Below are positions 13,346-61,839 of a stretch of 64,000 bases of DNA, in pieces. The stretch lies in assembly GCA_029953675.1 (NCBI GenBank), contig JAMWBK010000004.1:2108001-2172000 (forward strand), given 5' to 3'. The notes beneath the pieces are model-generated. The model was not told the origin of the DNA and made no database searches. It was given only the letters and a program-made list of their open reading frames with translations. Origin of the DNA: Rhodosorus marinus CCMP1338 (taxonomy: Eukaryota > Plantae > Rhodophyta). The first letter of the stretch is position 1. The number at the start of each line of letters is the position of its first letter. The position numbers and the translations under genes were made by a program.

Positions 13346-14481
13346 AGAGTCTGCCGCGAAAAACACTGCATGGTGTGCTCACTCACCCATCCATAGTGGC
13401 TCGATCGCTTCGGACAAGAAGAGTGTTCATTGTGACGCACCTTCGCGTTATCAAACGCTGTATCACTACCCCAAGTTCTTATTGGCTCAAACAATGACGT
13501 CCCAAGGAGCCAAGCAATCCGCGTCTCAAACAGACCATATTCTAGACTAATTCATAACGAACTTTTGCGTCTAGTATCTACCAAACACCATAATCTAGAT
13601 CTTCAGGGTTATCCAAAAACCTCCACCCATCTCGCAAGATCACGTCAAAACTCTACTAAAAAACAACAAACACCTTAAGAATCCTCGATTTGCATGGATT
13701 ATTGGCCAATCTCTAATTTTGTAGTGGGCCAATCATATCAAACTATAATCTCATATTTTACTTTTCCGGAGGGTAAAAAAGTAAATTGGTGCGAAAATCC
13801 GCCCCCAGACCCTGCCAAACCCTTTTGAAGACCACTTATTTTTTTCGAGTGGATGTGGAGTCATACTACTTGATGTGATACTCCTCCTGAAAAAAAGAAA
13901 AGTTTCTCTGTTTTGGTTTCTTTTTATTAAGAGCATGGTCAAAAAATATGAATATTATATGATATTTTGAGATTAAAGAAAGGGGGGGGGGTTGTTAGAA
14001 AAAGAGCTGTTTTCATTGTGGTTTAGAGAGGAGCGGTCTCTGACTAGTTTTGATGGTCAAGGGGATGAAGAGGAGAGGGGATGGAGTGCGGTGGGGAGGG
14101 AGGGAGGGAGTGAGGGGATTGCGGGGAGGGGCGGTGGTGGTGATGGTTTGAGAGAGAGTGTGAACTGGGAGAAGCTGACGACGAGTTTTTAGGGAGGTTT
14201 TAGGGGTTTAATTTTTTATAGTAGAAGGGGGGGGGTCTGTGGAAAGAGGTGTTTACTTGTCTGATTGTCTGTCTCTGGGTTTAGGTGTCTTTCTCTGCTT
14301 TGTTCGCTGTCTGGGCTCTATTTGATTTTGTTGTGGGACGGCGGCGAATGGCGTACTGTAGAGTCGGGGGCTATTTATGATTGTAAGTGGTTTGTTGTCA
14401 ACAGGTTTAGGAGAGTCGGGAGGGTTTTAGTGGTTTATCTAGAGAGGTTTTGAGTGTTGTCGATTTGGAGGGCGCGGTAGG

Positions 14482-16542
14482 ATGAAGGCACCAGCGGGAG
14501 ATTGGAAGCAATCGTCCGGAAGCGATTGGAAGAAGTCATCTGGAAATGACTGGAAAAAAGCCCCTGCTAAAGAGTGGAATAAGCCAACGCGGGAACGAAG
14601 TGCACCCAATCAGGCGCCCAAACCGAAGCAGGCGCCCAAACCGAAGCAGGCACCCCAACCGAAACAGGCCCCCAAACCGAAACAGGCCCCCAAACCGAAA
14701 CAGGCCCCCAAACCGAAACAGGCCCCCAAACCGAAACAGGCCCCCAAACCGAAGCAGACACCCAAACCGGCGCAGAAAAAGAGAGACGTAGTACAAGCAG
14801 GTCAGAGTGGAGATTCTTGGCTTTTGGGATTTCTAGGAAACGCTATACAGCGGTTCGCGGTTCCAGTCCTGGTGGGAGTTGGGATCTATGAGATTGGTAG
14901 GAGGTTTATTCTTAATCAGGACGACGGATGGCATTCCTTTGACAAGGATGTACAGAAGCAGCTGTACTTGGCCAGCTCCAGAGCAATTGAAAGTAGAAGG
15001 ATGGATAGGCTCTTCTACGATCCGATAGCGGCAGTTATTACCTCGAGGAAGGCTCTCAAAATTGCAGAGAAGGAAAACTCCCTGGCACAGACTGAATACT
15101 GCCTCAGAGAACGGTTTATCGATGATTTTGTCCGATCTACTCTGAAGAAGTCCGAAGAAATCAAACAGGTTATCTCTATCGGATGTGCGCTTAATACGCG
15201 ACTTTTCCGAATAGCGATTAGCAGGGATGATATTAAATTCTTCGAGGTGGACAAACCCAACGTGAGTACACGGGAACTGCATTCCTTCATTGGTCGCATG
15301 AACGACTAGCGGAGGAGGGAGGGAGGGAGGGAGAGTGGGAGGGTGGAGGGTCCTTTTGTTAACAATGCATTCTTCCTTCGCCACGCAGGTTGTTGAATAC
15401 AGAAAGAAGATATTGAACAAGGTGTCCGGAGCATTGGAAACAAAGATGAAATCAACTGAACTTGTGGGAGCCGATGTTGGCGTTGTGGGATGGGATAGTG
15501 AACTGATTGTCCAAGGACTAGACTGGAATCAGAAATCTCTTTGGATTGTTGATGATCCCACCGAACTGTCCGAGTCAAGGTTTGAAGTCCTGTTTCGTAC
15601 GATTGGATTACTCTCGACCCAGGACTCTATCATGGTTCTGGGTCTCTCAAATTGTACGGAGGAGAATTTTTCAAGCAAAGTCAACCTCGTTGCAAAGTGC
15701 GGCTATCAAGTCCACGGATCAACATTTGTTGGAGAAGGAAAGTCGGGTTATGGCAGATGGGTGGGAGACCCCTCAAACTCATGTGTTTTGAAGATCTCCC
15801 AGGTTTCCAAAAGACCTGCTACAGTATTGTCAGAAGGGTGAGTGAGAAACATTTAAGCCTACTGGAGACCATGCCCGACTAGGAGTCCAGGGAACCTAAA
15901 ATGTGGCCCTTATCCTGTGCTCTGAAGAAGATTCAGTGTTTTTTCGGAACATAGCGATCCTGAAGATGAGCCGAAATTCTCCGCCTTGGAGTTCTCTGCC
16001 GTTGGGGACACAGGTGAAGAACCTCAGGACTTTGGAGGCGCCGAGCAAAGCGTTGTACGGCTTGAGTTGCAGGTATTGTATCCATCAGACTAGTCAGAGC
16101 GTGCATGGTCGCTCGACCAGTGCAGAGTTTCCAGCGCGAAGCTTGGTCGTTAACTGAACCTTCAAAATGCGTTCACTTGTGCTACAGGTCGCTGAGCCAC
16201 CCAGCAAGTCAGGTAATATCTGTATCGTAGGCGACCACGAGCACTTGGGAGAGTGGGATCCTGAGAACGCTTTTCCTATTGGCCTTGCAGCCAGCGAGGG
16301 CACATTTATTGCCGAACTCTCCTTCCCTCTGAGTGTCCAATCCATTGAGTACAAGGTGAGGTTATCGCGCACGCCAGGTCCCCGAAGCTACTCACCCCAC
16401 GGCGAGCTTAACAAGCCTCCTCTTTCCATATCAGTTTGTGGCTGTTGATGGTGAAGACACTGTGTGGGAGAACGGACCCAATCGAACTTTGAATCTCAAC
16501 CGCGGCAGTCTGCTCGTCGTTCGAAACCGATGGTTTGATTGA
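14482..16542 (+). CDS. Repeat-rich N-terminus + hydrophobic segment + LCM/TIGR00027-type SAM methyltransferase + C-terminal CBM20 (about 540 aa, 5 exons)
   Basis: Exons 14482-15261, 15389-15837, 15955-16072, 16188-16355 and 16435-16542 join in frame via GT-AG introns. MTase motifs: SRAIESRRMDRLFYDPIA, RERFIDD, QVISIGCALNTR, FFEVDKPNVV. CBM20 motifs: ICIVGDHEHLGEWDPENA, IEYKFV, VWENGPNR. Confidence 0.8.
14611..14772 (+). repeat. Coding minisatellite, 9 x 18 bp (QAPKPK)
   Basis: caggc(c/g)cccaaaccgaa(a/g) repeated nine times in frame. Confidence 0.98.
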
Positions 16543-18108
16543 TAGAAGCTAAGCGAAAGCAAAGCGCTCAGGCGTCTCAAACGCCAATCTTTTGACATGG
16601 TATAATTCGTTCAGGCACTCTGTTTTAAATAAGTCACATTATTGTTCAGATCATAGTTATGCGAGGTCCATGAACTCGCTTACTGGTTACCAATGTAGGG
16701 GTAATGCACCCCGGCTCTTGTCTAGCTAAAATAGGATGTGGAGTGACAACAGCACTGGCGGCGACAACACCAGCCAACCCACATTTACTACTCCAGGAAA
16801 TTGTCCCAACTACAGTGCGCCCCTCTGCTCTGCCATGCGATTTACGAACCCATAACCTCCTCGAGCAATGCACTTCCTCTATTTTGAAGCAGACAGTAAC
16901 CATCACGCCCAACCTCAAGCACAGACTGTCTCCGAAAGTAGGACATGCTAGAACGAGAGGCTAAGATCTGAATCGTCGCACGGTAACCGCTCCTCATTCC
17001 CCTTAGTACAAAAATTGAATTGTACAAGTACAAGCAAGACCATCACTCATGAATCATTGACAAAAAGTAATCTAAATTTTATCAAATTCAAAAACAGGAA
17101 TAGTCCAATGATACCAAGTACTTCGAAATTTATCCAATTAAGTTTTACTAACTACCTATTACCTTCCTCATTAAACCGAGTATCAATAGTAATATAAATG
17201 AAATACATATATTCTGTCCCATATGGTACCTATGTCCAATAAATAAACATTATTCATTAATATTATATTCATTAAATACTTATTTAGACGCTAACGTCCA
17301 CATTATGCTGGATGAAAGGGTAAACCAAGTGAAGTGAGCAGTAAACAACATATAATAAAATTATTATGATTAATTTTATTAATATTATGGTATTGTGCTT
17401 GCGCGGGGGACGCGCGGCGTGGAATACAAATAAGCTGCTAGGGGAGGTGGGCAGGTTGCGGGGGGTCTTCTTCCCTTTCCCTTTTCCTTGTCTTTTTTCT
17501 AACCTAAAACTGCATTAATTTTAGTAGAAGCTACACTCTATGATGCCTTGACCTGTTAACGAGCTGACTTGAGAGACTGTTGAAGCTCTATGGCGTGAAA
17601 TGATGTACTGTCTGTGTTGATCCGTGAAGGGACTGTTGCTTTGAGCGTCATGCTCAGCGCTTTTCCGCGTGACTATTTTTTTTCATCCTGGGTTTTGCCT
17701 GGGAGAGGAGAAAATTTTCGCTCACTGTGATCCGTAGTCGTCGTCGGAGTAACGTCGTGGATTTGCTGAGACGTCGCTTTCGTTTCTGAGAAACGAGGGA
17801 TTCTGGATTTTCGGAAAGATAGCTGAGAGTGTGCGCTGCATGATTTAGCGCAAGTAATCGGGTTAGGAAAAGATACTCCTTTTTCAGCGCTGGCTGACGA
17901 GCATAAAGCGCGAGTGTGCTGAGATTCCAACTCAGTTCCTCCTGTTGACAATTCTGGATTCCCGGGGGAACGTTGCAGCTATGCTATCACCTACTCACCG
18001 CACACGTGAGGCAGCACACGAGTGCTTCCACGGCAAAAGTTTGTTTTACACAGTGTACAGTTTATTAATAAAATCCTAAACAGTCGGGTTTTGCCCGGAA
18101 AGGTTGTC

Positions 18109-20572
18109 CTATGATCGTCGCTTGGTGAACTTGCGTTTGGCGAACGCGTCAAACGCGCTGCTTCTCGGACTTCTCGGATTGGAGTTCTCTCGCTTGTTCT
18201 TTTGCTTCTTCTGCTTTCCACGATCATAATCGGCATCGTATTCGTCCCCGTGCCGTTCGCGTTTCTGGAACCTCGTTGAGACACGGTTCGATTCAAGAAT
18301 CGATCGAGATTCTTTGACATCCTCCTCTTTCAAGTCCTCCCATGTACGGGCTTCCGGAAACACCACGCCCTGACCTCCCTCGGTGGGGTTGGATTGCGTC
18401 CGTGTTGGGCTCGATGGGCCGTTTGCTGATACTTCCAAAGGCGCTTGTGCTGTCTCCCCTGTTTCGAGGCTCCCGGTGGATTCCTCATTCTCATCCACGT
18501 TGCGCTTCTTCAATTCCAAAGCTGGTTTCCGCTCAGTACGATTTCGAAGGCGCGCCGCGTACGCGGCTATTTGAAGCCGGAGGTAGGAACGGTTGGAAAG
18601 GCTCATCATCGAAAGAAGAGAGTTTGACACCGTTTTTCGGAAAGCCCTATGCCCGGTTTCCAAACTGCTTCGCTTGCCCATCTTCGACCCCTTCCGTTCG
18701 CCATCGCTCGACCGCTTGCTGCCATCGTCTTGCTGCTCAGAGAAACCTTTCCATTCAAGAACATCAGGTGAAGAAAAACAAGCTTCAGAGCTCAATATCT
18801 TCGACCTCTCAAAGTGCTTCTCGGCCTCACCATTGGATAGATTCTCCTGGGCAAGCCCGCTCGTCCCCGGATCACTGTCATCCGAAGACTTTGCCTTTGT
18901 CGGAAGGGCTTCTGCTCCTCGAGAATTCCTCATCCCAGTGTTGCTATTTGATGAAGTATGGCCTTTCACTAGCTCAGAGCTGCTGGTGCTTTTGCAGGAA
19001 GACGAGTCATCGGTGCCCTCCGAGTGATCGAGATCATCACCCTTGTCACCAGATTCATACGGAGGCGTCAACGAGTGATCGGAAAAGCTCTTCTCGGAAT
19101 AGAAGCTCTCCGACGACGGTGAGCTGTTTTCAGACGTTGGGCTGAATCCAAGCTTCTCTTGGGTCTGCGGTGGTAGGTCCGTTCTCCCACCCTGTTTGCC
19201 TGGACGCTGTTCCTTTTGGTTCGGTTCATTTCGAGTTTCGCGAACGTAGAATAGTAAATACGCGTTCTGCTTCAGCACAGAGGAAGCGCCAACCTAGTTC
19301 GGAAAAACAATGGACGAGGAGTTCAGAAACGGTCTAGTGCTGGAGAAACCACATGCTACTATCCAGATGCTATGAGAGTCACGTACATGAGAACTTGACT
19401 CATCATCTTTCAGCGACCACGTTCCGTTTGCGTTTCGGACGTAGGAATAGTAGTGTCCGACATGCATGGATGAACCCTCGTGGATTAGAACACCGATAAG
19501 ACGATACCTCGCGGAGGTCTTCGCTGGGCAGCCAATCATGTATTCCTCCAAGTTCAACTTTTCACCGTAGGCGACATGCTTTGAGTTCTTTCGGAGGTGA
19601 TCGAATCTGGTGTGGGCGATGCAGAAAAGTAGTAGCACCAGTCAGCACCTTTGATCTTTCTTGGGGTTGTGAGGTCTCTTTTGTGAGTGGTGCCTCTTCG
19701 AACCTTTTCAAATGGAGCGTGAGAACGTTTGGAGCTCGGCGAATGGTCATGCGCTTAAGCGCGGATACATACGATTTGCACTTGTCACAACGGTACTTGT
19801 TGGTGCCGTCCAGCCTTTCCACGGCGGTGAATTTTTCTAGTGCACTAGCCACCGTGTTCGAGTTGTAGATATCGAGCGATAGGTCTAGGAAGGGCTCGCT
19901 TACAACGCTCACCGCTTTGCAATTCGTGCAAGTCACCGAATTCTGGAGACACCCGCCAAACATGCTGTGCACGATAGACCTCATCTCGTCCATATGATTA
20001 TGCGTTCGGTCCATGCCTTTTCGGCCGCTGGGCTTCAAACTGGACTTCACCATTCCATCCAAAACATGCCTTACAAACTCGTGAGCGTCTTCTTGTCTGC
20101 CAGGTCTGAATGTCCGGCAAATCACTCTCTGGTTTTGAACAAATGATGTCGGCGTTACAACGCGTTTGTCCCTGCTCGAGTTGTGCACTTGCGGGTATAG
20201 CTCCTCAAAAGCGCAGAAGCTGCAGAAACCACCCACGCCCTTATGATGCTTGGAGAGGTGGCGGGAGTGCATTTTCTGAGCCAAAACTCTTGCCAATGGA
20301 GGTGTATGGAGGAGGCACTGCAGCGATGCGTTCATGAAACAGGTGTTTCCCATATTTCGAAAACCAGGACCCGAGGGGAGCATTTCCTTCCATTCCAGGT
20401 TCATGCCGTTAGCGACTGGAGTAACCCACTTGCCCCCAAACCCAGTTTGGGAATCATCCGTCTGCTGATTCCGATCACCCTTTCTCCGTTCTTCCGTCAG
20501 ATCATCTCCAACCCAATTAGAAAACTCCTTGCTCCTTCCCGGAACAAAACTGATTCGACTGAGAGCGCCCAT
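18109..20572 (-). CDS. Ubiquitin-specific protease, USP36/USP42 (UBP23-like)
   Basis: Cys box GFRNMGNTCFMNASLQCL, QEDAHEF, His box HEGSSMHVGHYYSYVR, NAYLLFY, and C-terminal DYDRGKQKKQK. Two introns. Confidence 0.9.
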
Positions 20573-36014: not shown

Positions 36015-37717
36015 ATGGAGGCTGAGCCCGAGGTTGTCCAGAAGGCCTCGGAGCAGGCGGTCGCCGGTTTTGCTGATCAGGCGGTCAGCTTCTTCGCCAA
36101 GGTTTCCCAGCTCTACGATGAGGTTGGTATTCATACAAGCCTGGCTTGCATGGCAGTTTAAAGGTATCAGGGAAACTGACTTGAGTCGCCTCGATTCGGT
36201 GCTGAACAGAAATCTGGCCTTTTGCGAGATGCCGTGCAGGCGACAGGTCTGGCCTTTGTCGCGTGGTGGAGGCTAGTCGGGCCCTTTCTGATCCTTTTGT
36301 TCTCGCTTTTGAAGGGTGGTGCGCTTCTGCTGCTAAGGGCTTTAGCACCAAGTTGGCCCTATGTAGTGAAAGGCTTTCACAAAACGCGTACCACCAGTGC
36401 ATCCATGGCCGCAATGGCTTGGCCTCATATTAAGGAGTCCCTGAGAAGTATGCTGTTTTCCTTTACTGTCATTTAAAACAGTTTTAACCCTTCAGCTCTG
36501 CCTGGATCACAAACCAGCTAACGAGCGACTTTCGTTTGACACGCAACAGAGATGGCCAGAGGAGTCGCTGCCGCAGACCCCAGAACGATCATCACAGTGC
36601 TTTTGGCCGTATCCGTTCTCTTAGCGGGTGGATATGCTTTGATCAGACTCTCAACGATGCGACGGAAATCGCGCAAGAGAATGTCGACGGGGTTACGAAA
36701 GAGTGGCGCACTCGTAGTCGCCTACCTATCTCTCTTGGTCATTTTCTTCCTTCCCGACCAAGTGCTTGTTGACGACGTGCTTCCCACGTCTACGCTCATT
36801 CACATTCCTCTCTACATGAACCTGAGGCTCCTATCGGTAAGTTAAAGCGGGGTACTACAAGCTTCCCGCAACCACTTTTGCTGACCGGTTTTCTTTTTGG
36901 ACGAGAGCAGAAGAAAGCGGACGCTAGCACTGCGGAATCCTTCGACCATTGGTTGTGTTATTGGGCAGTTCACGCAGTCCTTGATCTCATATGGAGATTC
37001 CCAAGAGTCGGAATCCGAGCTCGCGGGATATTTGTTTTCGGCAAGGTTCGGATGCTTCTAGGGGTCTGGCTAGGGTTTCCAATATTTGGCGGAGCAGAGC
37101 TGATAATAGACGCATTGGCGCCGCTCATAGATAAGAACTTCAAACGGATGCCAAAGAACAATCTCAACAAAGCGACGAGCTGGATTTTGAGCATGTTGCA
37201 ATTCGGAAACGTCGTAACGCCTGAGAAAGCTAGTGAGATCAAACTAGCCCTCTCAGACCCAGGGTTCGTGGTAGCCTTCGCGGCTGTATTCCTTATTACG
37301 CCCGAAATTATCACCCGTGGGGCGTGCCTTTTTGTCGAACTTGTGTCACCTATTTATGCGTCAATGTACTCGTACATCAACGAGGATATTTCCCTGAAGA
37401 CGAAATGGTTGCAGTTTTGGGTAGTCTCCAGACTGATGCTTCTCATTCTGGACCAGGTGCGAGACTTGACAAGCTACATCCCACTGTGGACACGTCTTGA
37501 GTTGTTGGTTTCAATCTGGCTACAAATACCTTATTTCAATGGTGCGTCGAGGGTATACAAAGAACTTGATACACTTTTCGCGAAGGGCCGGGAGCTTGCG
37601 AATCGAATTGGCATCCTCAAGAAGGCGAAGACCGTAGATAACGAAAATAACAAAGCGACCGAAGTTAATGATGCAGACGAGGTGGCTCAAGTATCAGATG
37701 AGCGAAAAAATCAATAA
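36015..37717 (+). CDS. Multi-pass membrane protein with two TB2/DP1/HVA22 (REEP/Yop1) domains
   Basis: DHWLCYWAV...LGVWLGFPIFGGAELII and PIYASM...TKWLQFWVV...LLVSIWLQIPYFNGASRVY, plus hydrophobic upstream exons. Confidence 0.78.
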
Positions 37718-39119: not shown

Positions 39120-41786
39120 CTAGGGACCGCCGACTGGTAGAAGGCCACAGAGTTTGGAAGCCGTATCTATTGCTTTGCTGACATCTCTCGAGTCTAAATG
39201 GAGGTGTCTCTGCCTAGCGATCCTGATCAGGTCTACCACGCTTTCCGCATCCCTGTCATTTCCAGCCGCTTCGATTAAGTAGGAGAGCGTCTTCGGGGTG
39301 GTTGGAACCTGCCTCCGTCTCATGACCTTGAACATCCTCTGCGCTCTTCTTAGCTGACCTGCTTTCGCAAGACCACCGAGAAGCTCCTCGTACATCTGAG
39401 CGAGCCTAGCCCCGTCGCTCTTGAAGTTAAAGCATTTTCGAATTGTTTCGATAGCCCTCGAGAATTGCTTCTCTCGCGTGTATGCTCTGGTCACTGCGAG
39501 CCATGCGTTGTCTTGGGCCATCAATCTCGGAGATGATCTCAGTACGTCCTTAACCCAATCTCCCGAAACAAGTTCAGATAAATATAGCAGCGCCTCGCTG
39601 TATGCGCTTGCGTCGTCAATTCGCATTTTCTTCCAAGTATTCACAGCTGAATCAATATTACCTTCGTCCGCGTACTTCTTCACGACCGCTGCTAACATGC
39701 TTTCGTTCCGAAATCCAGACGTGAATGCCTCCTCCAGGCTGATCTCAGCACTTCTAGTTGTGGGAGAAGCCAGCACGAGCTCCAAGAAACTTTCCCGATC
39801 CCGTTCTTTTACAGAATAGAACGTTTTCTTAGCAAGATCGTCCCTGCCTACTCTCCGCAAGGCTCTCATCAGATGCGGAAGGGTTTCCTCGTCGACGATC
39901 ATAGGTTCCATTGATTCAATGGTCTGAACCACCGCAGACGCTTCCTGTTGTGATCCGCTCACTGGAAGAACGTCGAGAAGGGCTACCAATAGACTAGGCG
40001 TTAGAGATAGATCGCGAGCTACCATTTCCTCCAACAGGAAGCAAATTTCCTCAACATCTCCAAAGGTACACTGAATCATCAACTTGAAGGTCGCGTTATC
40101 GACTTCCAGACCTTTTTCAAGCATCTCGGACAGGATGGCACGAACTTGTCCACGCTGGCCAATTCGGTGGGTTGCCTTGAGCAGCAGCCGAAACAGAGCC
40201 GGCCGAGCCTCCAAGCTTCGGTGTCGGAAGTCTCTGTAAGTTCTAATCGCGGAAACACTATCTCCCGCGTGGAGTTTAGCCAGCATCAAAGCCTCAAAGG
40301 TTTCAGAAGTGGGCTGAAGTTTCAAAAGAGAAAACTTTGCGAACAAGGCATCGACGTGCTCGACGCAGCCTCTCGAAGCATAGGCCTTGAGCAGAAAGTT
40401 GGCTGTTTTGATTCCCGGTCGCCAACCTGCTGTGATTAGCCTGGAGGAAATCGATTGCACTTTTCCGAGTTCATCATTTCGCACGTAGGCAGCGATGAGT
40501 GACAGGAGCATTGACTCGGTAGGCTCCGGAAAGTGCTGACGCGCGCGTCGATACAATCTTGCAACTCCAGCTTTGTCTCCAGCAATGTAAAGGCCTCTCA
40601 TGGCACTCTCGTACGCATTCGTGTCACACCGTATCCTCTTAGTGCTCATCTCCTCCAGGACAGACTCAACTCCATGAGAATGTGCGAGCGCCGCATAGAT
40701 GCTCAGAGCGACTTCGTACGAGGAAGAATCCATCTCCAGCCTTCTTTGCCGCATGCTGTCGAGGGTCATCAGCGCCTTTCGAGGTTGGGAAGCGGCAATC
40801 CAGCCTTGCGCTACTCTGATAAAATCACTTTCGCAGGGCGATTCTATTTTCTCAAAGTGTTCCATTGCTTTCGGCATGTCCGAGTTGAGAACATGAGCAG
40901 TCAGTCGCGCCCTGTTTGCCTCAGTCCTCATTGCGGGAGAGGCATTCCTCCTCTCTAGAGTTCGATAGAATTGATCAATCCTTTCAATCGCTGCGCACCG
41001 CCCGAACGCACTCATGGCTTCCTTCGCGAGCTTGTCGTTTAGATCAACTCCTTTGGCCTTCATCGCCTTTAGGATGCCGTTCACCTTTGGACCATTCCCA
41101 ATTTGTGCCCGTTTTCGGAGTAGGAGAGCGAATGTATCTTCCCCGGCAGCCGCGTTCGAGCTAGCAACCTCGATGACGATTCTGTCCACGACATCTGCGT
41201 CCTTGGCGACTTCAACGCAAGCCCTAATCAGCGCATCAGACAGACAGCCAGCACAAGCTCTGGAGTTCGCAGACAGTTTTTCGAAGCTCGCAAGACCGAC
41301 AGATCCCTCGGAGCGAATCGCTTGAACGATCAGGCCATCGGTGCCCGCATTTCTGAAAAGTCCGGGGTGTCGACTAAGAACATTTAAGATCTTCTCGAGA
41401 TCACCAGCGTTCGATGCCGTTGTGAAGGTCTGCTCGACCCCATCCGGTGGCCGTGTCTCCTTCCTCGCCTCGACTGCCTCTTCAGACACAAGAGCCTTCA
41501 AGTCGATCCCAAGCTGCGCTGTTCGAAACACAAAAGCTTAGAGGGCAGTTCCCGAGGGTTTCATCCTCGTATATCAGAGATTGGATCTTCACCTCACCTT
41601 CGGAGCTAGTGAGAGCAGCTCATTCGCCACGACCTTTCCGAACTGACTCTCAACACCACCAAGAAAGGCACCCAAAGCCCTTCCATCAGATCCAACCTCT
41701 CGAAACTGCTGTAGAAGGAGAGAGATCCTTCCCCGAGATTTCTTGAGGTGTTCCACGACGCCTTGCAAAAATGTTGCTACGGTCAC
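39120..41786 (-). CDS. Pentatricopeptide repeat (PPR) protein; additional 5' exons probably lie upstream, start unresolved
   Basis: 803-aa ORF with repeated 35-aa helical units, e.g. TANFLLKAYASRG..., YEELLGGLAKAGQLRRAQRMFKVMRRRQVPTTPKTLSYLI. Confidence 0.88.
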
Positions 41787-52233: not shown

Positions 52234-54185
52234 ATGGCGTCAGTAGAGTTTACAACAGATCTGGAACAAATCAGATCGGCTTCCAACGTCGTTTTGGTTG
52301 GATCGAAGATTGGGCTGCTCAGCAAAAATGCTATGGATCTTCTACCGAGTGGAGTCTCGCACGATTTGTGGCGGGTTCTGATAGAGCAGGCGAATCCGTC
52401 TACAACAGGTAAAGTGTCCAAAACGCTTTGCGGATGTAGGCATTGCGATGATTTTGCTCACAAGTGGATTGTTACACTCGGTTGTTCGCAGCTGTGAGGG
52501 TGCCCCTGAACTTTTTGGAGGAAGGAAAGCTGGTATCTGTTTCAGGGATGGTAACACCGGCCCGAGCCTCAACATCGAGGCATAATCATGCGTACTCACC
52601 ACACAGCATCGCGGTAGGTTTCCACTGCTCTTATAGTGACTTCATTGGTCCGGGTTTCCTTACCGTTTCTGCGGTCTTAGGCATTGCTTCCCTCAGTGGG
52701 CTGGAGCTGCAATACACTTACGATCGCCGTTGTCGTAGAAGAAACAGCGGACGCTTTTGGCGCAGGATGTGCAGTATCAAGAGCGTTCCCGCTTTTCAAT
52801 GAGAAAACTAGGGGAGCGGACATGTCCGAGAACAATGTTGTCGTCGCATTGGTCCATGCGGGTGATGGGAGTGCTGAATTGGTGAAGATTACGCAGACTC
52901 TGTCTGTCACCTCCGAGTGCATCCGTCACACTCAGAGATTGGTGGATTCGCCTCCGAACAAGTTGACTGCTGATACCTACGTGAAGTAAGACATCCGTTC
53001 GCATCCGCTCGACACAGGGGATTCACACGTGATCGCGGGCTCAATAGGAATTTGTTGACGCCGCTGACAATGGTCGCCTTCGGGTTTGAACAGGGAATGC
53101 CTTGAAGTCGCAGCTGAGCTGAAGGGAAATGGAGTAGAGTCTAAAGTCTTCCGAATGAAGGAGCTCCAGGAGAACGGCATGGGTTGTCTAGAGGGAGTCG
53201 GTCGAGCATCCATAGAACACAGTGGAGAACCCGCCATGGTAATTTTGAGCAGAAGAGCACCAAATTCTTCAAGCACGGAAGCAGCGAGAACAGTCACTTT
53301 TGTCGGAAAAGGAATCGTCTTCGATACTGGCGGCCTATCGTTGAAGCCAAAAGAGGGAATGTGTGAGATGAAGGTAAGTTCATCGACCGGTGACCGAGCA
53401 CCTGTGAGAGGCCAGTTTTTCACACGTTCTCTGTTCTTTTGTCAGATGGATATGGGTGGCTCAGCCGCTTGCTTGTATGCGTTTCGCGCAGCGGTGCTGT
53501 TGAATTATCCCGGGAACATCAATGTAGTCATGTGCATAGCGGAAAATGGAATCGGACCTACGGCGCTAAAACCGGACGACATCATCACGTCGTACTCGGG
53601 GAAGACAATTGAGATCAACAACCCAGATGCGGAAGGTAGGGCGCATCTGCCATCTGTTGCTGTTCTTGCGTCGTTTGAAACGGGCGAAGTTTGAAAGAAC
53701 CCTCAAGCGCAAGGCTTTTTTTCCCCATCCCGTGATCCGAAGGACGTTTGGTTTTAGCGGACGGTGTGTCTTACGCGGCACGGGACCTGAAATCCGGAGT
53801 CATCGTTGACATGGCAACGCTGACCGGCGCCCAGATGGTTGCAACTGGACAACGCCATGGGGCAGTGATTAGCAACGACCGGGAAACTGAAAACAAGCTT
53901 TTTACTGCCGGCTTGCAGTCCGGGGACCTTACTTGGCCTTTGCCATACTGTCCAGAATTTTTCCGTGCAGAGTTCGTTTCGAGAGTGGCAGATATGAAAA
54001 ACAGCGTCGCCAATCGCGCTAATGCACAGCCTAGCTGTGCAGCTCAGTTCATCGCAGACCACCTGCCTGCAGACTATCAAGGCTCGTGGGCTCATATTGA
54101 TATGGCGGGGGCGGCGATGAAAGATGGGAGATCTACAGGTTATGGCGTAGCGCTCCTTGTACAGTATTTAAGCCTCGGCGTATGA
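52234..54185 (+). CDS. M17 leucyl aminopeptidase, NPEPL1-like
   Basis: FVGKGIVFDTGGLSLK, MK|MDMGGSAA, EINNPDAEG|RMVLADG, DMATLTGAQ, MKNSVANRANAQPSCAAQFI, HIDMAG, RSTGYGVALL. Confidence 0.93.
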
Positions 54186-56602: not shown

Positions 56603-58665
56603 ATGCCGTGGGTGGCCACACGCGCAAAGACGTCCAGATTCTTTGCTCAGCGTGATTCTGCTGAAGCTGCCGGGGGCTCGCAAGGGCGTGAACAGATTAA
56701 GCCTGAGGAAGCTATTCAGTCGGAACAAAACAAGCTTTCCCTACTGGGAAGGGAAATAGAAGGGACGAGCAGCAATGTTTGGAGTTCGGTTTTCGGTGAC
56801 GGGCAAAAAGGTACGGGAACCTCGGATCCATTCGGAAATCCACTGCCTGAGGATGAATCCCTGGCGTGGAAGACAAGTGGTATGAGTCTGTGGACCTCAC
56901 CTTTTGAGTCCAAGAGTGCTGAAGAAAGTGACGATGATGCGCGACACAGCAACACTGCGCCTCAAGGGCTAAACGTTGCTGCGACGGAGGGCAAGACTGC
57001 AACGACACCTCCAAAGAAAGCTGATTCAGGGCTTACTCAGTTCAGGATGACAACCAAGAACTTCTACTCTGAACAAAGCAAGGCTGTGCCGTTCACTCCC
57101 CAAAAGGAGAAACCGACGTTGATTGTTATGGAACGGGAGGTCGTATTTGCGCAAGAGGAAGCCTTCGACCCTGGACCTTTGGCTGAAGACGAGCCTGAGG
57201 TAGATGAGGACGTAGAGCCAGCAATTGAGCCGGATGCGTATATGAACGGCTTTAAGACCAACGTTCCCTGTAAATTTTTCTTGGAAGGTTTTTGCGCTAA
57301 TAGTGATTCTTGCAGATATCTGCACCATACGGATGAATCAGTTCAAGGTAGGCGTGAACTGCTCGTAGAGTGATCAAACTGCTTTGCTTGCAAACGTACA
57401 GAGCTAGGTCTTTTTTGAGTTTGCTGATCGAGGTTTGAGGAAACCAGGACTTCCCCCTACGGCAGTGTGGTTGAGCTTACCATTGACCTGTCGCAATTAG
57501 CTGCAAAAACTCCACTGGGAGCCTAAACGTGTTCCCTTGTGAACTGTGCAGGTTACACTCATCCTGTAGAGTACGACATCAATATTGCACATGTAAATGA
57601 GAGTGGAATCCTGCAACCCGATCCGGCTATGGAAGCTAGAAATGTTCTGCAACCTCTTTACCCCTCTGGGGTCAGTTCGTGGGATCCATCGGGGGAGCTT
57701 TGTTCTTTTCATGTGACAAATGATTGCAGATATGGCTCTACTTGCAGGTATATGATCAATCGCTATGATCTCTCAATTGTGTTCATAGCTGAATGTTGAA
57801 CCTCGTTTCCTAGGTACCTCCATGGCAACCAATGTTCGTACTGCCTGTCCAACGTGCTACATCCTGTGGACGAAGATAGAGCGGACGAGCATGTCCAAAA
57901 CTGTGCAGCTATGATGGGTATATCGCAAACCACGTCGACGGAGGCCCAGGAAAGCATCACTTGTGGTGAGTGTGACCTGTAATCAAATGGTCCAATGCTG
58001 AAACTCCGCCACTGAACAGGTGCTGCTGTGCGTCACGACTCCCAGGAATATGCATGAACCAGACGCGCGGTTTGGGTAGAAAGTTTGGCATGCTAATGAA
58101 CTGCACACATGCTTTTTGCCTTGAATGTATTCGTAAGTTTTGCCAAACGCGGCGTGCAAGGTAGACAGGAATGGAAAGCAATACTGAACCATAGCATTTT
58201 GCCTACAGGGGAGTATCGGGGGAACGACTTCAGTGGGAGAACCATACGAGCTTGTCCAATCTGTTACGTGGAGTCCGACCTTGTGCTACCCAGGTAATTC
58301 TTTTTAGGTCTCATCATCATACTGTTTCTTTTCTGGCTCGAAGACGCAAACTGAGGGCATATTGGTTTTGTCGCTCGTGCAGTTTTACATTCGTTCTGGA
58401 CCCACAGAAAAGGAAGGAGTTGTTTGCAGGACACACGGGTCGCTTATCGGAAATTCCATGTAAGCACTTCAGTTACGGAGAAGGAAACTGTCCTCTAGGT
58501 GCAGGTAAGCTCAAAGCGACCGACCAGATGCAATCCTAACCACTGCATTCTAACAAGAAGAATCTTTCTTTTTACGAATCGTCCGCCTATTCGGAAGATT
58601 GCTACTTTGCCCACGTTGACGCCAGGAAATTGAGAACTACACTAGTCTCTAGCGCGAAGAGATAG
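56603..58665 (+). CDS. MKRN: Makorin-type CCCH/RING E3 ubiquitin ligase
   Basis: CCCH fingers CKFFLEGFCANSDSCRYLH and CSFHVTNDCRYGSTCR; makorin Cys-His motif CSYC...EHVQNC; RING with KFGMLMNCTHAFCLECIR...CPIC; C-terminal PCKHFSYGEGNCPLGA|DCYFAH. Confidence 0.9.
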
Positions 58666-60549: not shown

Positions 60550-61839
60550 ATGGCCTTCGTAGGGTTAGGAGGGGGTTATAGCCCTGGAAGACGCGGGGTC
60601 AGGCACGTGATATGCGGTTCGGAGGCTGCTGATAACAATTTGGTTGAATTTCGGCAAAGCTTTGAGGGATTTAAGAGAATACCGGTAGATACAGATACGC
60701 TTAGGTTGATTCGGGAAGAAGTCTCAAAGATTCGCGATGAGGTCAAGGTTATTGTAGAAGTCCGGGACCCAAGAGTGCCGATGAGCTCCTACAGCACCAT
60801 GTTCAAGCAGTGGAGAAAGGAGCTGAAGACGGAGAGCATGGTTATTTACACGAAAGCGGAAATCGTACCAGAGGATCAGAAGGAACGTATTCGCGCTTTT
60901 ACGATGGATCAGATGGATATCCCGTACGAGCAAGTAAGTTCGCAGCTGGAAAGCTTCAGTCGTCGGCAATGTTTACTGACTGTGGAGTGCCTCACGTTAT
61001 TATAACTCCAGGTTTTTTTTGAGGATCTCAGACAGGTGCGCAAGCTTCGCACCCCAGACCGCCAGGAAATGGTTTCGAAAATGAAGCGGCTGGCGTTGCT
61101 GCAAGGGAAACCTACAATGAAGAGGGAGAGCTATAAAGTGATGGTAACCGGCGTGCCAAACTCTGGGAAGAGCAGTGTCGTTTACGTGAGTACTCGAACA
61201 TTGACAAAGAACCGAAAAAGACGCGGCTTGTACTCTCTCCCACCAGTGGGATTTCAGGTTGGAACGACCAAGGTCATTGGGCAGAACTGGTTAACGCTCA
61301 ACCCGGATGTGGTGCTCCTCGATACCCCGGGTGTCATCAGCAAGTCTCATACCGGAGCCGAGGACCCGGAGACGCCGTACAAACTCGCTGTTTGTCAGTG
61401 TATTAGTCTGACCAAGCTAAGCGAACAGACAGGCATTACATCAAAGGAGGTCGCCGATTATTTACTGTTCAAGCTAAATCAAGCTCAGGAACTCACGTAT
61501 ACTCGAATATATGATCTGATTCTTCCGACCGATGACATAGACGAAGTTCTCCAACGAGTGCCAGGCGCTACGGATGAACTGAAGGCGCTCAGGTTTTTGA
61601 GGGACTTCCAGCGAAACAAACTGGGATTTCTGGTCTTAGACGACATTCCTGAACTCGAAACAGACAGACCGGACAAAGAGGAAGTGGATGATTTCGTGGA
61701 CGAAGTAGAGAGGAAGTTCCAAGAGGTCAAACGAAGAACTCGACTTGAGAGGATGCGACAAAAGAGGCTCATGATGTGGAAGGATGAGCCGGAGGAGACC
61801 TCAATTGGGAGAAACCCACCATCCGACTTCAATTTCTAA
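60550..61839 (+). CDS. Circularly permuted ribosome-biogenesis GTPase (RbgA/YlqF/MTG1 family), probably plastid-targeted
   Basis: VIVEVRDPRVP, G1 GVPNSGKSS, G3 LLDTPGV, one intron, and an MAFVG N-terminus typical of red-algal transit peptides. Confidence 0.85.

Follow-up and report, generated by a model that had tools for sequence, protein, structure and literature searches.

One spliced gene joins an LCM/TIGR00027-fold methyltransferase-like domain to a CBM20 module in the red alga Rhodosorus marinus

The 64-kb stretch of Rhodosorus marinus DNA analyzed here (the window) contains, on its forward strand, an open reading frame for a methyltransferase-like protein that ends at a TGA (15839–15841) upstream of sequence coding for a CBM20 module. 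This arrangement raises the question of whether the two belong to one spliced gene and, if so, what such a protein might do. The first-pass annotation had proposed a hidden fusion and had read it as a starch-targeted SAM methyltransferase acting on glucan or granule proteins. Comparison with transcripts, related genomes, and structural models confirms that an LCM-like domain and a CBM20 are fused in one gene, and it places the functional reading on a different footing.

The gene occupies 14482–16542 in five exons, all on the forward strand, and encodes ~548 residues in the order Lys/Pro-rich repeat, hydrophobic helix, LCM/TIGR00027-fold domain, acidic linker, and C-terminal CBM20. Translation would start at ATG 14482, the earliest start codon past an in-frame stop (ORF analysis). 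The R. marinus cDNA L001 aligns from window position 14281 (cDNA nt 47–249, ~82% identity) and reaches position 16654 (86–92% identity), which gives minimum extents of 14281–14481 for the 5′ UTR and 16543–16654 for the 3′ UTR. Exon 1 (14482–15261; aa 1–260) carries the low-complexity N-terminus, the hydrophobic helix, and the N-terminal half of the LCM-like domain. It is followed by intron 1 (15262–15388; 127 nt, GTGAGT...CAG, phase 0), whose cDNA junction matches at 47 of 50 nt and which has a counterpart at the same position in the related genomic contig L008. Exon 2 (15389–15837; aa 261–410, with the first two bases of codon 410) is 95.8% identical to the cDNA at the nucleotide level, with its junctions confirmed, and intron 2 (15838–15930; 93 nt, GTGAGT donor) is removed at a 15837/15931 junction matching at 48 of 50 nt, again with an L008 intron at the same place. 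Exon 3 (15931–16072; aa 410–457) encodes the acidic linker and strand β1 of the CBM20, as judged from the cDNA junctions and the AlphaFold2 model. Intron 3 (16073–16187; 115 nt, GTATTG...CAG; junction 44/50) is also removed in P0006, a transcript-derived product. Exon 4 (16188–16355; aa 458–513) holds the CBM20 core with W480 and K513; intron 4 (16356–16434; 79 nt, GTGAGG...CAG; junction 46/50) is shared in position with L008; and exon 5 (16435–16542; aa 514–548 and TGA) completes the CBM20 with W524, E525, and N529. An antisense ORF of 195 aa (14833–15420), which runs across intron 1 and faces conserved coding exons, was discounted as a gene.

The stop codon that ends the methyltransferase ORF lies, as originally noted, inside a GTGAGT donor (15838–15843), and this donor is used in the R. 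marinus cDNA. The donor of intron 2 in L008 likewise contains a stop codon (TAA). Removal of 15838–15954 and 16073–16187, the two segments first proposed as introns, does keep the frame when recomputed from the sequence, and the full coding sequence requires two more introns, 15262–15388 and 16356–16434. The removal of intron 2 stands, but the acceptor assigned to it at 15953–15954 does not: the cDNA uses the AG at 15929–15930, and a 15837/15955 junction aligns on one side only. Further in-frame acceptor AGs are present at 15935–15936 and 15953–15954. Splicing to 15929–15930 rather than to 15953–15954 retains eight extra residues (FSVFSEHS). Because exon 3 of the cDNA begins at the equivalent of window position 15931, the predicted product is likely to be 548 aa, reading SEG followed by FSVFSEHSDPEDEPK, rather than the 540 aa put forward before.

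The closest transcript to the window gene is that of Rhodosorus marinus (L001; 1900 nt, MMETSP0315). It is collinear with five window blocks at 92–96% nucleotide identity and matches 44–48 of 50 nt at each of the four exon junctions; the agreement over blocks and junctions is far beyond chance. This collinearity, together with the intron positions of L008, bears out the proposal of a methyltransferase fold and a CBM20 in one spliced gene. The competing account would have two separate genes, a methyltransferase ending at TGA 15841 and a CBM20 gene of its own, with the fused transcript an assembly chimera. The genomic ORF does end at 15841, and databases hold split fragments produced by ORF-based callers (P0157, P0007, P0012, and P0006). 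However, one and the same fusion of 501 aa is encoded by two independent contigs from R. marinus, the UniProt fragment A0A7S0BKZ1 carries it likewise, and L007, a transcript of a second species, runs continuously from the methyltransferase domain through the linker into the CBM20. Contig L008, at 46% amino acid identity, keeps the same four intron positions with their phases, and the homologues P0109 and P0151 are intronless single ORFs that hold both parts in the same domain order. Moreover, a CBM20 without exon 3 would miss its first strand. The two-gene account is very unlikely, to the point of being barely credible. Relative to the R. marinus sequence (dS ~0.2), dN/dS is 0.071 for the methyltransferase domain, 0.054 for the CBM20, and 0.28 for the linker, values that point to strong purifying selection on both domains. 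As to the split fragments, P0157 comes from a third Rhodosorus strain, and P0007 and P0012 come from L008, a more distant relative. Prokaryote-style ORF calling breaks the gene into pieces in public protein sets, and surveys of red-algal domain architectures can therefore be expected to under-count it.

Coding tandem repeats identified by TRF span 14500–14769 and comprise a 24-nt unit present 2.5 times (DWKK-type, 14500–14559) and an 18-nt unit present 8.8 times (KQAPKP, 14611–14769). The R. marinus orthologue nearly lacks the KQAPKP array, with a gap of 48 aa. Residues 112–144 (14815–14913) are modeled by AlphaFold2 as one long helix, with a Kyte–Doolittle 19-residue maximum of 1.49 at aa 117–135, which is borderline for a transmembrane segment. 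Hydrophobic segments occur at the same relative position in P0083 and P0029 (Kyte–Doolittle 1.9–2.0), and similar ones are seen by eye in the translations of L007 and L008. The helix is a possible membrane anchor.

The CBM20 (aa 449–548; 16046–16539) is split by introns 3 and 4. Its identity, already proposed from the sequence, is borne out by a Pfam CBM_20 (PF00686) score of 49.6 bits against a cutoff of 23.3 (E = 3e-13), by an AlphaFold2 model with an eight-stranded β-sandwich (mean pLDDT 86.8), and by conserved site residues. The first strand, QSVVRLELQ (aa 449–457; 16046–16072), lies wholly in exon 3, as had been surmised, and is modeled with a pLDDT of ~92. Foldseek matches include the CGTase E-domains (TMq 0.75, rmsd 2.2–2.4) and the CBM20 of STBD1 (TMt 0.81, rmsd 2.0 Å, 28% identity). 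W480, K513, W524, E525, and N529 align with the CGTase motifs LGNW, FKF, and WEGGANR, in which W616, K651, W662, E663, and N667 form what we take to be binding site 1. Across 34 CBM20 segments, in an alignment made without L008, the Trp and Lys are invariant and the second Trp and the Glu nearly so; in laforin, W32, K87, and W99 are the named CBM20 marker residues (PMC8703398). The predicted binding site 1 is intact.

The LCM/TIGR00027-fold domain (aa ~150–405; 14929–15823) is split by intron 1 and contains motif I, IGCALNTR (15178–15201), and motif IV, WIVDDPTE (15542–15565). It scores 77.1 bits against Pfam LCM (PF04072; cutoff 22.3), compared with 127–158 bits for canonical relatives, and a marginal 96.9 bits against NCBIfam TIGR00027 (cutoff 93.55). 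AlphaFold2 predicts a class I Rossmann fold with the N-terminal helical lid of the family, at pLDDT >90 over the domain, and the best Foldseek matches are ML2640c, Rv0731c, LCMT-1, and PPM1. Its residues were compared with 28 canonical sequences in the numbering of M. leprae ML2640c, for which the SAM contacts (R28, R90, A/G113, S114, G115, D135, D164, L165, E189, and G190) and the carboxylate-clamp landmarks Thr20 and Tyr/Phe194 are taken from PMC10193983. Seven of the ten SAM-contact positions are compatible in the window protein, and three are changed: G115 to Ala, E189 to Asp, and G190 to Asp. Among the canonical sequences, position 115 is Gly in all 28 and positions 189–190 are Glu-Gly in 25. 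At the clamp landmarks the window protein has K159 and E319. These changes are conserved within the Rhodosorus clade, which keeps the equivalents of R28, R90, and D135 and, in three of four members, D164 (Tyr in L008). The segment ESRRMDRLFYDPI, a part of the lid three residues past the R28 equivalent, is identical in all four members, and G[CS]AL[ND]TR and WI[VI]DD are conserved across the clade despite ~46% overall identity. The designation as a SAM methyltransferase therefore holds for family and fold and fails for the canonical SAM and clamp residues. SAM binding is putative, because G115 is replaced by Ala and three of the ten contact positions differ. Likewise, a glucan-acting methyltransferase could not be upheld as something that follows from the family: because the motif-I glycine, E189–G190, and T20/Y194 are changed, it becomes a hypothesis in its own right, and the characterized enzymes of the LCM family that PMC10193983 names all methylate carboxyl groups, with a sugar hydroxyl the acceptor of none.

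The architecture had also been thought not to represent a described family. No publication describing it was found in the literature search; it is not unique, as other eukaryotic LCM + CBM20 proteins exist, all of those found being uncharacterized. With the full-length protein as query, the KQAPKP repeat saturated the word filter and left only one homologue matched. Omission of the repeat gave four matches, as did a 10-sequence profile, and exhaustive phmmer searches revealed the other LCM + CBM20 proteins. The Porphyridium purpureum protein (KAA8495271.1/A0A5J4YUU4, 739 aa) and P0029 (806 aa) lie above both Pfam thresholds; P0109 and P0151 pass for CBM_20, and their LCM-like domain, below Pfam listing, was matched by local phmmer only. 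In the Porphyridium-type P0083 and P0029, the SAM-contact positions and Y194 are canonical, and T20 is replaced by Ser, which many canonical members also have. R28, G115, and E189 are lost from both P0151 and P0109, and D164 from P0151 alone; both proteins keep the CBM20 site-1 residues. They cluster with the window clade in 88 of 100 neighbor-joining (NJ) bootstraps and are probable sister lineages of it, although this grouping may reflect long-branch attraction. The loss of most SAM residues alongside a retained CBM20 suggests that the architecture can work without catalysis. A single origin of all CBM20-linked LCM proteins was not supported (0 of 100 NJ bootstraps), on a tree too weak to prove independent fusions.

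The α-glucan of red algae is floridean starch, which is cytosolic. Based on the sequence and models, the most likely reading is a granule-docked, putatively SAM-binding domain with changed acceptor chemistry. The CBM20 would dock the protein onto this cytosolic starch, the hydrophobic helix may keep it at a membrane, and the LCM-fold domain would be the working pocket, still binding SAM through the counterparts of R28, R90, D135, and D164. Its acceptor side appears remodeled, with the T20/Y194 clamp gone and E189–G190 replaced by a clade-conserved Asp-Asp pair. Because the SAM-side counterparts are kept while the clamp is lost and the Asp pair gained, the domain is read as having shifted acceptor; the new acceptor group might be a hydroxyl or an amine, carried by the glucan, by a metabolite, or by a protein of the granule. 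An acidic residue gained at position 190 agrees with such a change, because the canonical enzyme is unable to methylate an alcohol (PMC10193983). Conservation of the lid segment and the active-site loops in the clade makes the ligand pocket look alive. That the protein is in full a granule-localized methyltransferase shifted from carboxyl-ester chemistry to another acceptor is held tentatively, at somewhat less than an even chance. Observations that weigh against it are the Ala at G115, the three changed SAM-contact positions, the Tyr at D164 in L008, the state of P0151 and P0109, in which the CBM20 persists although most SAM residues are gone, and a helix that is only borderline (1.49). Neither methylated floridean starch nor a methylated granule protein was found in the literature search.

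A serious rival to this reading is a pseudo-methyltransferase that acts as tether or adaptor. Its LCM fold would serve, without catalysis, as a scaffold or to sense SAM/SAH, and the protein would link starch granules, bound by the CBM20, to a membrane or to partner proteins, reached by the helix and the LCM-fold surface. Such a protein would be the red-algal counterpart, in function, of STBD1, which spans the ER membrane and bears its CBM20 at the C-terminus (PMC5358331). The substitution of G115, E189–G190, T20, and Y194 fits a tether, as do the grouping with P0151 and P0109, the hydrophobic segment ahead of the domain in P0083, P0029, and, by eye, L007 and L008, and the place of the STBD1 CBM20 among the best structural matches (TMt 0.81). 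However, conservation within the Rhodosorus clade is highest in the lid and the altered active-site loops, which would be surprising if the domain were just a scaffold; contacts to adenosine and ribose are kept; and the grouping may be a long-branch artifact. The tether and the STBD1 analogy are plausible but less likely than not.

Two catalytic alternatives fare less well. The protein might be a canonical OPCMT/LCM carboxyl methyltransferase positioned at starch, where it would esterify the carboxylate of a small acid or of a protein C-terminus on the surface of the granule, as the granule-protein option of the first-pass annotation implies. This would be in keeping with the carboxyl methyltransferase activity of characterized family members (PMC10193983), the canonical SAM positions and Y194 of P0083 and P0029 (with Ser at T20), and a TIGR00027 score just over the cutoff. 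Both clamp landmarks are gone, however (T20 to Lys, Y194 to Glu), E189–G190 is Asp-Asp, and ML2640c carrying both T20V and Y194F has no activity (PMC10193983), all of which make this reading unlikely. A floridean-starch O-methyltransferase would instead methylate glucose hydroxyls of the glucan itself, the first option of the first-pass annotation. The domain carries in cis a CBM20 whose site 1 is intact, the new Asp pair lies where hydroxyl methylation would need a general base or metal ligand, and mycobacteria have cytoplasmic polymethylated α-glucans (MGLP; PMC2674218). Against it, methylated floridean starch was not found in the literature search, sugar methylation is not known from any member of the family (PMC10193983), and SAM binding itself is uncertain. 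Methylation of starch hydroxyls is decidedly improbable, and a true α-glucan O-methyltransferase in this clade, with an Asp-Asp pair in place of the clamp as base or metal site and with its CBM20 holding it on the granule, would be a long shot.

The surroundings of the gene give no functional hint: its neighbors (UCH, PPR, M17 peptidase, HVA22, and CCCH) are ordinary housekeeping genes, and an Rfam scan of the 64-kb window returned no matches. CBM20-tagged laforin, SEX4-type phosphatases, and glucan dikinases define the covalent editing of storage glucans. A methyltransferase fold on a CBM20 points either to a so far unrecognized step of modification or regulation at starch granules in the cytosol or to a new instance of an enzyme fold turned into a tether between granule and membrane; if glucan methylation were true, storage glucans would have, besides phosphorylation and dephosphorylation, a third system of covalent modification. 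The fusion is conserved but unstudied, and its two natural versions, a Porphyridium type with a canonical active site and a remodeled Rhodosorus type, offer a ready-made comparison.

Among known systems, the best sequence and structure matches are the OPCMT-like/TIGR00027 enzymes ML2640c, Rv0731c (M. tuberculosis), and MnMT4 (M. neoaurum), with PDB phmmer E values of 2e-3 to 6e-3 and Foldseek TMt of 0.67–0.74. The window protein shares their N-terminal helical lid, Rossmann core, and R28, R90, D135, and D164 counterparts; it departs from them at G115 (Ala), E189–G190 (Asp-Asp), T20 (Lys), and Y194 (Glu), and in being eukaryotic and intron-containing, with a repeat and a helix at its N-terminus and a CBM20 at its C-terminus. 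LCMT-1 and PPM1, the PP2A leucine carboxyl methyltransferases that founded Pfam LCM, belong to the same family and fold, but identity is 12–14% by structural alignment, the ECxxxY-type motif IV is absent from the window protein, and the comparison gave no sign of a PP2A-tail binding lid. Closer in design are P0029 and KAA8495271.1/A0A5J4YUU4 (predicted as "SAM-dependent methyltransferase MAV-4444"), with an N-terminal hydrophobic segment, LCM, and a C-terminal CBM20; the host of the latter, P. purpureum, is another unicellular red alga. Unlike the window protein, the Porphyridium type has canonical SAM and catalytic positions and a linker of ~400 aa rather than ~45 aa, and it never joins the window clade (NJ, 0/100 bootstraps), which fits independent fusion and deep divergence alike.

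A cytoplasmic O-methylated α-glucan is made by mycobacterial MGLP methylation (PMC2674218). Unlike the window protein, the MGLP system is bacterial. To our knowledge, it is the sole precedent for such a glucan, and we know of no part played in it by a CBM20. STBD1 (genethonin-1) resembles the window protein in its hydrophobic N-terminal segment and C-terminal CBM20; in STBD1 no enzyme-fold domain separates the anchor from the CBM20, and the window helix is only borderline hydrophobic. Laforin (CBM20 with DSP), the red-algal SEX4-like phosphatases, and PWD/GWD3 (CBM20 with dikinase) likewise carry a CBM20 in cis with an enzyme fold, a design of organisms with cytosolic insoluble glucan (PMC2064834, PMC8703398), and the laforin CBM20 is a Foldseek structural match to that of the window protein. 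The likeness is one of architecture only, the partner of the CBM20 here being a methyltransferase fold in place of a phosphatase or a dikinase.

The red-algal gene at 14482-16542 (+) is real, conserved, and so far unstudied. Its genomic open reading frame with methyltransferase homology ends at a TGA (15839-41) that lies inside a GTGAGT (15838-43), which the first-pass annotation had taken for a splice donor. That donor is used: a 50-nt probe across the 15837|15931 junction is identical at 48 positions to the cDNA of the closest relative, from Rhodosorus marinus, and probes over the first, third, and fourth spliced junctions are identical at 47, 44, and 46. The assembled model comprises exons at 14482-15261, 15389-15837, 15955-16072 (exon 3 as originally proposed), 16188-16355, and 16435-16542, all on the + strand. 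It yields an open 540-aa frame in which all introns are GT...AG, and retention of any single one of the four introduces in-frame stops. A fused R. marinus transcript is collinear with the window in six blocks of 82-96% identity, with gaps that correspond exactly to the four proposed introns.

Removal of 15838-15954 and 16073-16187, as first suggested, keeps the frame and places intron 3 correctly, but the acceptor of intron 2 was wrong; the cDNA uses the AG at 15929-30. Intron 2 at 15838-15930, with a predicted 548-aa product reading SEG|FSVFSEHSDPEDEPK, is the better model because exon 3 of the cDNA starts at the equivalent of 15931 and the 15837|15955 junction matches the cDNA on one side only. 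The UniProt fragment A0A7S0BKZ1 has a junction identical to the cDNA-based one. Between 15929 and 15954, three in-frame acceptor AGs occur (15929-30, 15935-36, and 15953-54), and a switch among them would change linker length by 2 or by 8 residues. R. marinus transcripts show the first alone; minor isoforms may arise through the other two, since these are likewise in frame. The structural observation was right except for this one acceptor site.

The only close database relative, P0001 (501 aa), is uninterrupted on two JGI contigs of ~1.9 kb each. Its 90% cluster includes EukProt EP00189_Rhodosorus_marinus_P009381 (MMETSP0315) and A0A7S0BKZ1, and the two contigs are therefore R. marinus transcripts. 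L008, a genomic contig of a more distant relative (~46% aa identity), has GT...AG introns that interrupt the same four codons as in the window, and its donor following ...SEG likewise contains a stop (TAA). L007, a transcript from another sample, runs continuously from the end of the methyltransferase (MT)-like domain via the linker into the CBM20. At 800-850 its frame changes and, compared with L008, the stretch linking the MT-like domain to the YGRWVG segment is shorter by ~30 residues, which could reflect alternative splicing or an assembly error. In P0006, a Rhodosorus-type product of 113 aa on a JGI contig, intron 3 is out and intron 4 is retained and read into, which is evidence that splicing of the transcript was incomplete in a third strain. 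ORF-style gene calling left single-exon fragments (P0157 in a third Rhodosorus strain, P0007 and P0012 in L008), which shows how the fusion stays hidden.

Relative to R. marinus (dS ~0.2), dN/dS is 0.071 in the MT-like domain, 0.054 in the CBM20, and 0.28 in the linker; the low values in the two domains indicate that both halves are maintained by selection. The N-terminal low-complexity tail carries an 18-nt coding tandem repeat (KQAPKP, 8.8 copies; 14611-14769), just downstream of a 24-nt DWKK-type repeat (14500-14559). The KQAPKP array is nearly gone from the R. marinus orthologue (48-aa gap) and is a strain or species length polymorphism. On the + strand, GGGAGGGA-type G-rich tracts occur upstream of the gene (14060-14130) and within intron 1 (15311-15350), and the GC skew over 14001-16000 (+0.24) is the top positive value in the window. 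An antisense ORF of 195 aa (14833-15420, -), which faces exons 1 and 2 and the intron between them, is probably spurious, and an Rfam scan of the window gave no matches. Neighboring ORFs at 18109-20572 (-), 36878-37717 (+), 39120-41531 (-), 53086-53694 (+), 56603-57373 (+), and 61036-61839 (+) carry UCH (a protease), TB2/DP1/HVA22, PPR, Peptidase_M17 (an aminopeptidase), CCCH zinc-finger, and MMR_HSR1 GTPase domains. These are unremarkable nuclear genes, and introns can be seen to divide several of them.

The MT-like half matches Pfam LCM (aa 163-314, E = 2e-21) and NCBIfam TIGR00027 (96.9 bits; cutoff 93.55). Modeled with AlphaFold2 from a 127-sequence alignment, the domain has pLDDT > 90 with one long helix ahead of it, and its top Foldseek matches are ML2640c (2uyo, 2uyq), Rv0731c, LCMT-1, and PPM1. 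ML2640c of M. leprae and its relatives are carboxyl methyltransferases; ML2640c contacts SAM through R28, R90, A113, S114, G115, D135, D164, L165, E189, and G190, and T20 and Y194 are its two landmark carboxylate-fixing residues (PMC10193983). Mutating both of these, as T20V/Y194F, abolishes activity, and an alcohol analogue is not methylated (PMC10193983). These positions were mapped onto 28 canonical homologues, both fusions of the Porphyridium type, and the window clade (the window protein, R. marinus, L007, and L008). Glycine occupies G115 in 28/28 canonical homologues, nearly all of which have S/T at T20, E-G at 189-190, and Y/F/H at 194. Both Porphyridium-type fusions follow this canonical pattern throughout; the window clade does not. 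All four clade members carry alanine at G115 and D-D at E189-G190, with K/E/S at T20 and E/Y/T at Y194. R28, R90, and D135 are retained throughout, and D164 in all but L008. The derived residues fall within the clade's most conserved stretches, ESRRMDRLFYDPI, G[CS]AL[ND]TR, and WI[VI]DD. Judged by sequence, the MT-like half is not a canonical family member.

The C-terminal half matches Pfam CBM_20 (E = 3e-13). Modeled separately (aa 438-548, mean pLDDT 86.8), it has QSVVRLELQ (aa 449-457) as strand 1, coded entirely by exon 3, in agreement with the earlier proposal that this exon supplies the first beta-strand. W480, K513, W524, E525, and N529 line up with CGTase site-1 residues and are invariant or nearly so in 34 CBM20 segments.

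An exhaustive phmmer survey of 1.84 billion representatives, followed by local domain mapping and Pfam, revealed the LCM-CBM20 combination in KAA8495271.1/A0A5J4YUU4 of Porphyridium purpureum (739 aa) and in the Porphyridium-type P0029 (806 aa). An MT-like domain plus CBM20 occurs in two eukaryotic relatives encoded by intronless single ORFs, P0109 (678 aa; L005 5001-7037, on a eukaryotic contig where an EB1 gene adjoins) and P0151 (458 aa; L003 5001-6377). Both have lost most SAM-binding residues and retain CBM20 site 1. The architecture, which the first-pass annotation did not recognize as a described family, is described in no publication found by full-text literature searches, but it is not new in sequence space, as KAA8495271.1 and P0029 illustrate. 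In neighbor-joining trees the window clade was recovered in 100/100 replicates and was joined with P0151 and P0109 in 88/100; monophyly of all CBM20-linked proteins appeared in no replicate. One ancient fusion or repeated fusions would both be possible.

Starch in the host organism is cytosolic, and a straightforward reading of the CBM20 half would be a site-1-competent targeting module. The suggested starch-granule-targeted methyltransferase agrees with the intact site 1, but the functional label is too strong, the MT-like half being non-canonical at G115 and E189-G190. Because the altered loops have been conserved and are not decaying, we tentatively favor, at somewhat less than even odds, a pocket that still functions but whose acceptor chemistry has changed. 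The main rival, which we consider a lesser though serious possibility, is that the protein would perform no catalysis and, as an analogue of STBD1, act as a tether or sensor. Pointing that way, P0151 and P0109 are much more degenerate than the window clade at the mapped active-site positions, and a hydrophobic helix lies ahead of the MT-like domain in red-algal members. Relative to either the altered pocket or the tether, a canonical carboxyl-methyltransferase role is unlikely, and direct methylation of glucan more improbable still.

In Foldseek comparisons, the aa 438-548 model resembles CGTase E-domains, the STBD1 CBM20, laforin, and the glucoamylase starch-binding domain, and also 2z0b, the CBM20 of a human putative glycerophosphodiester phosphodiesterase. 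The gene varies an established design, "CBM20 plus enzyme fold."
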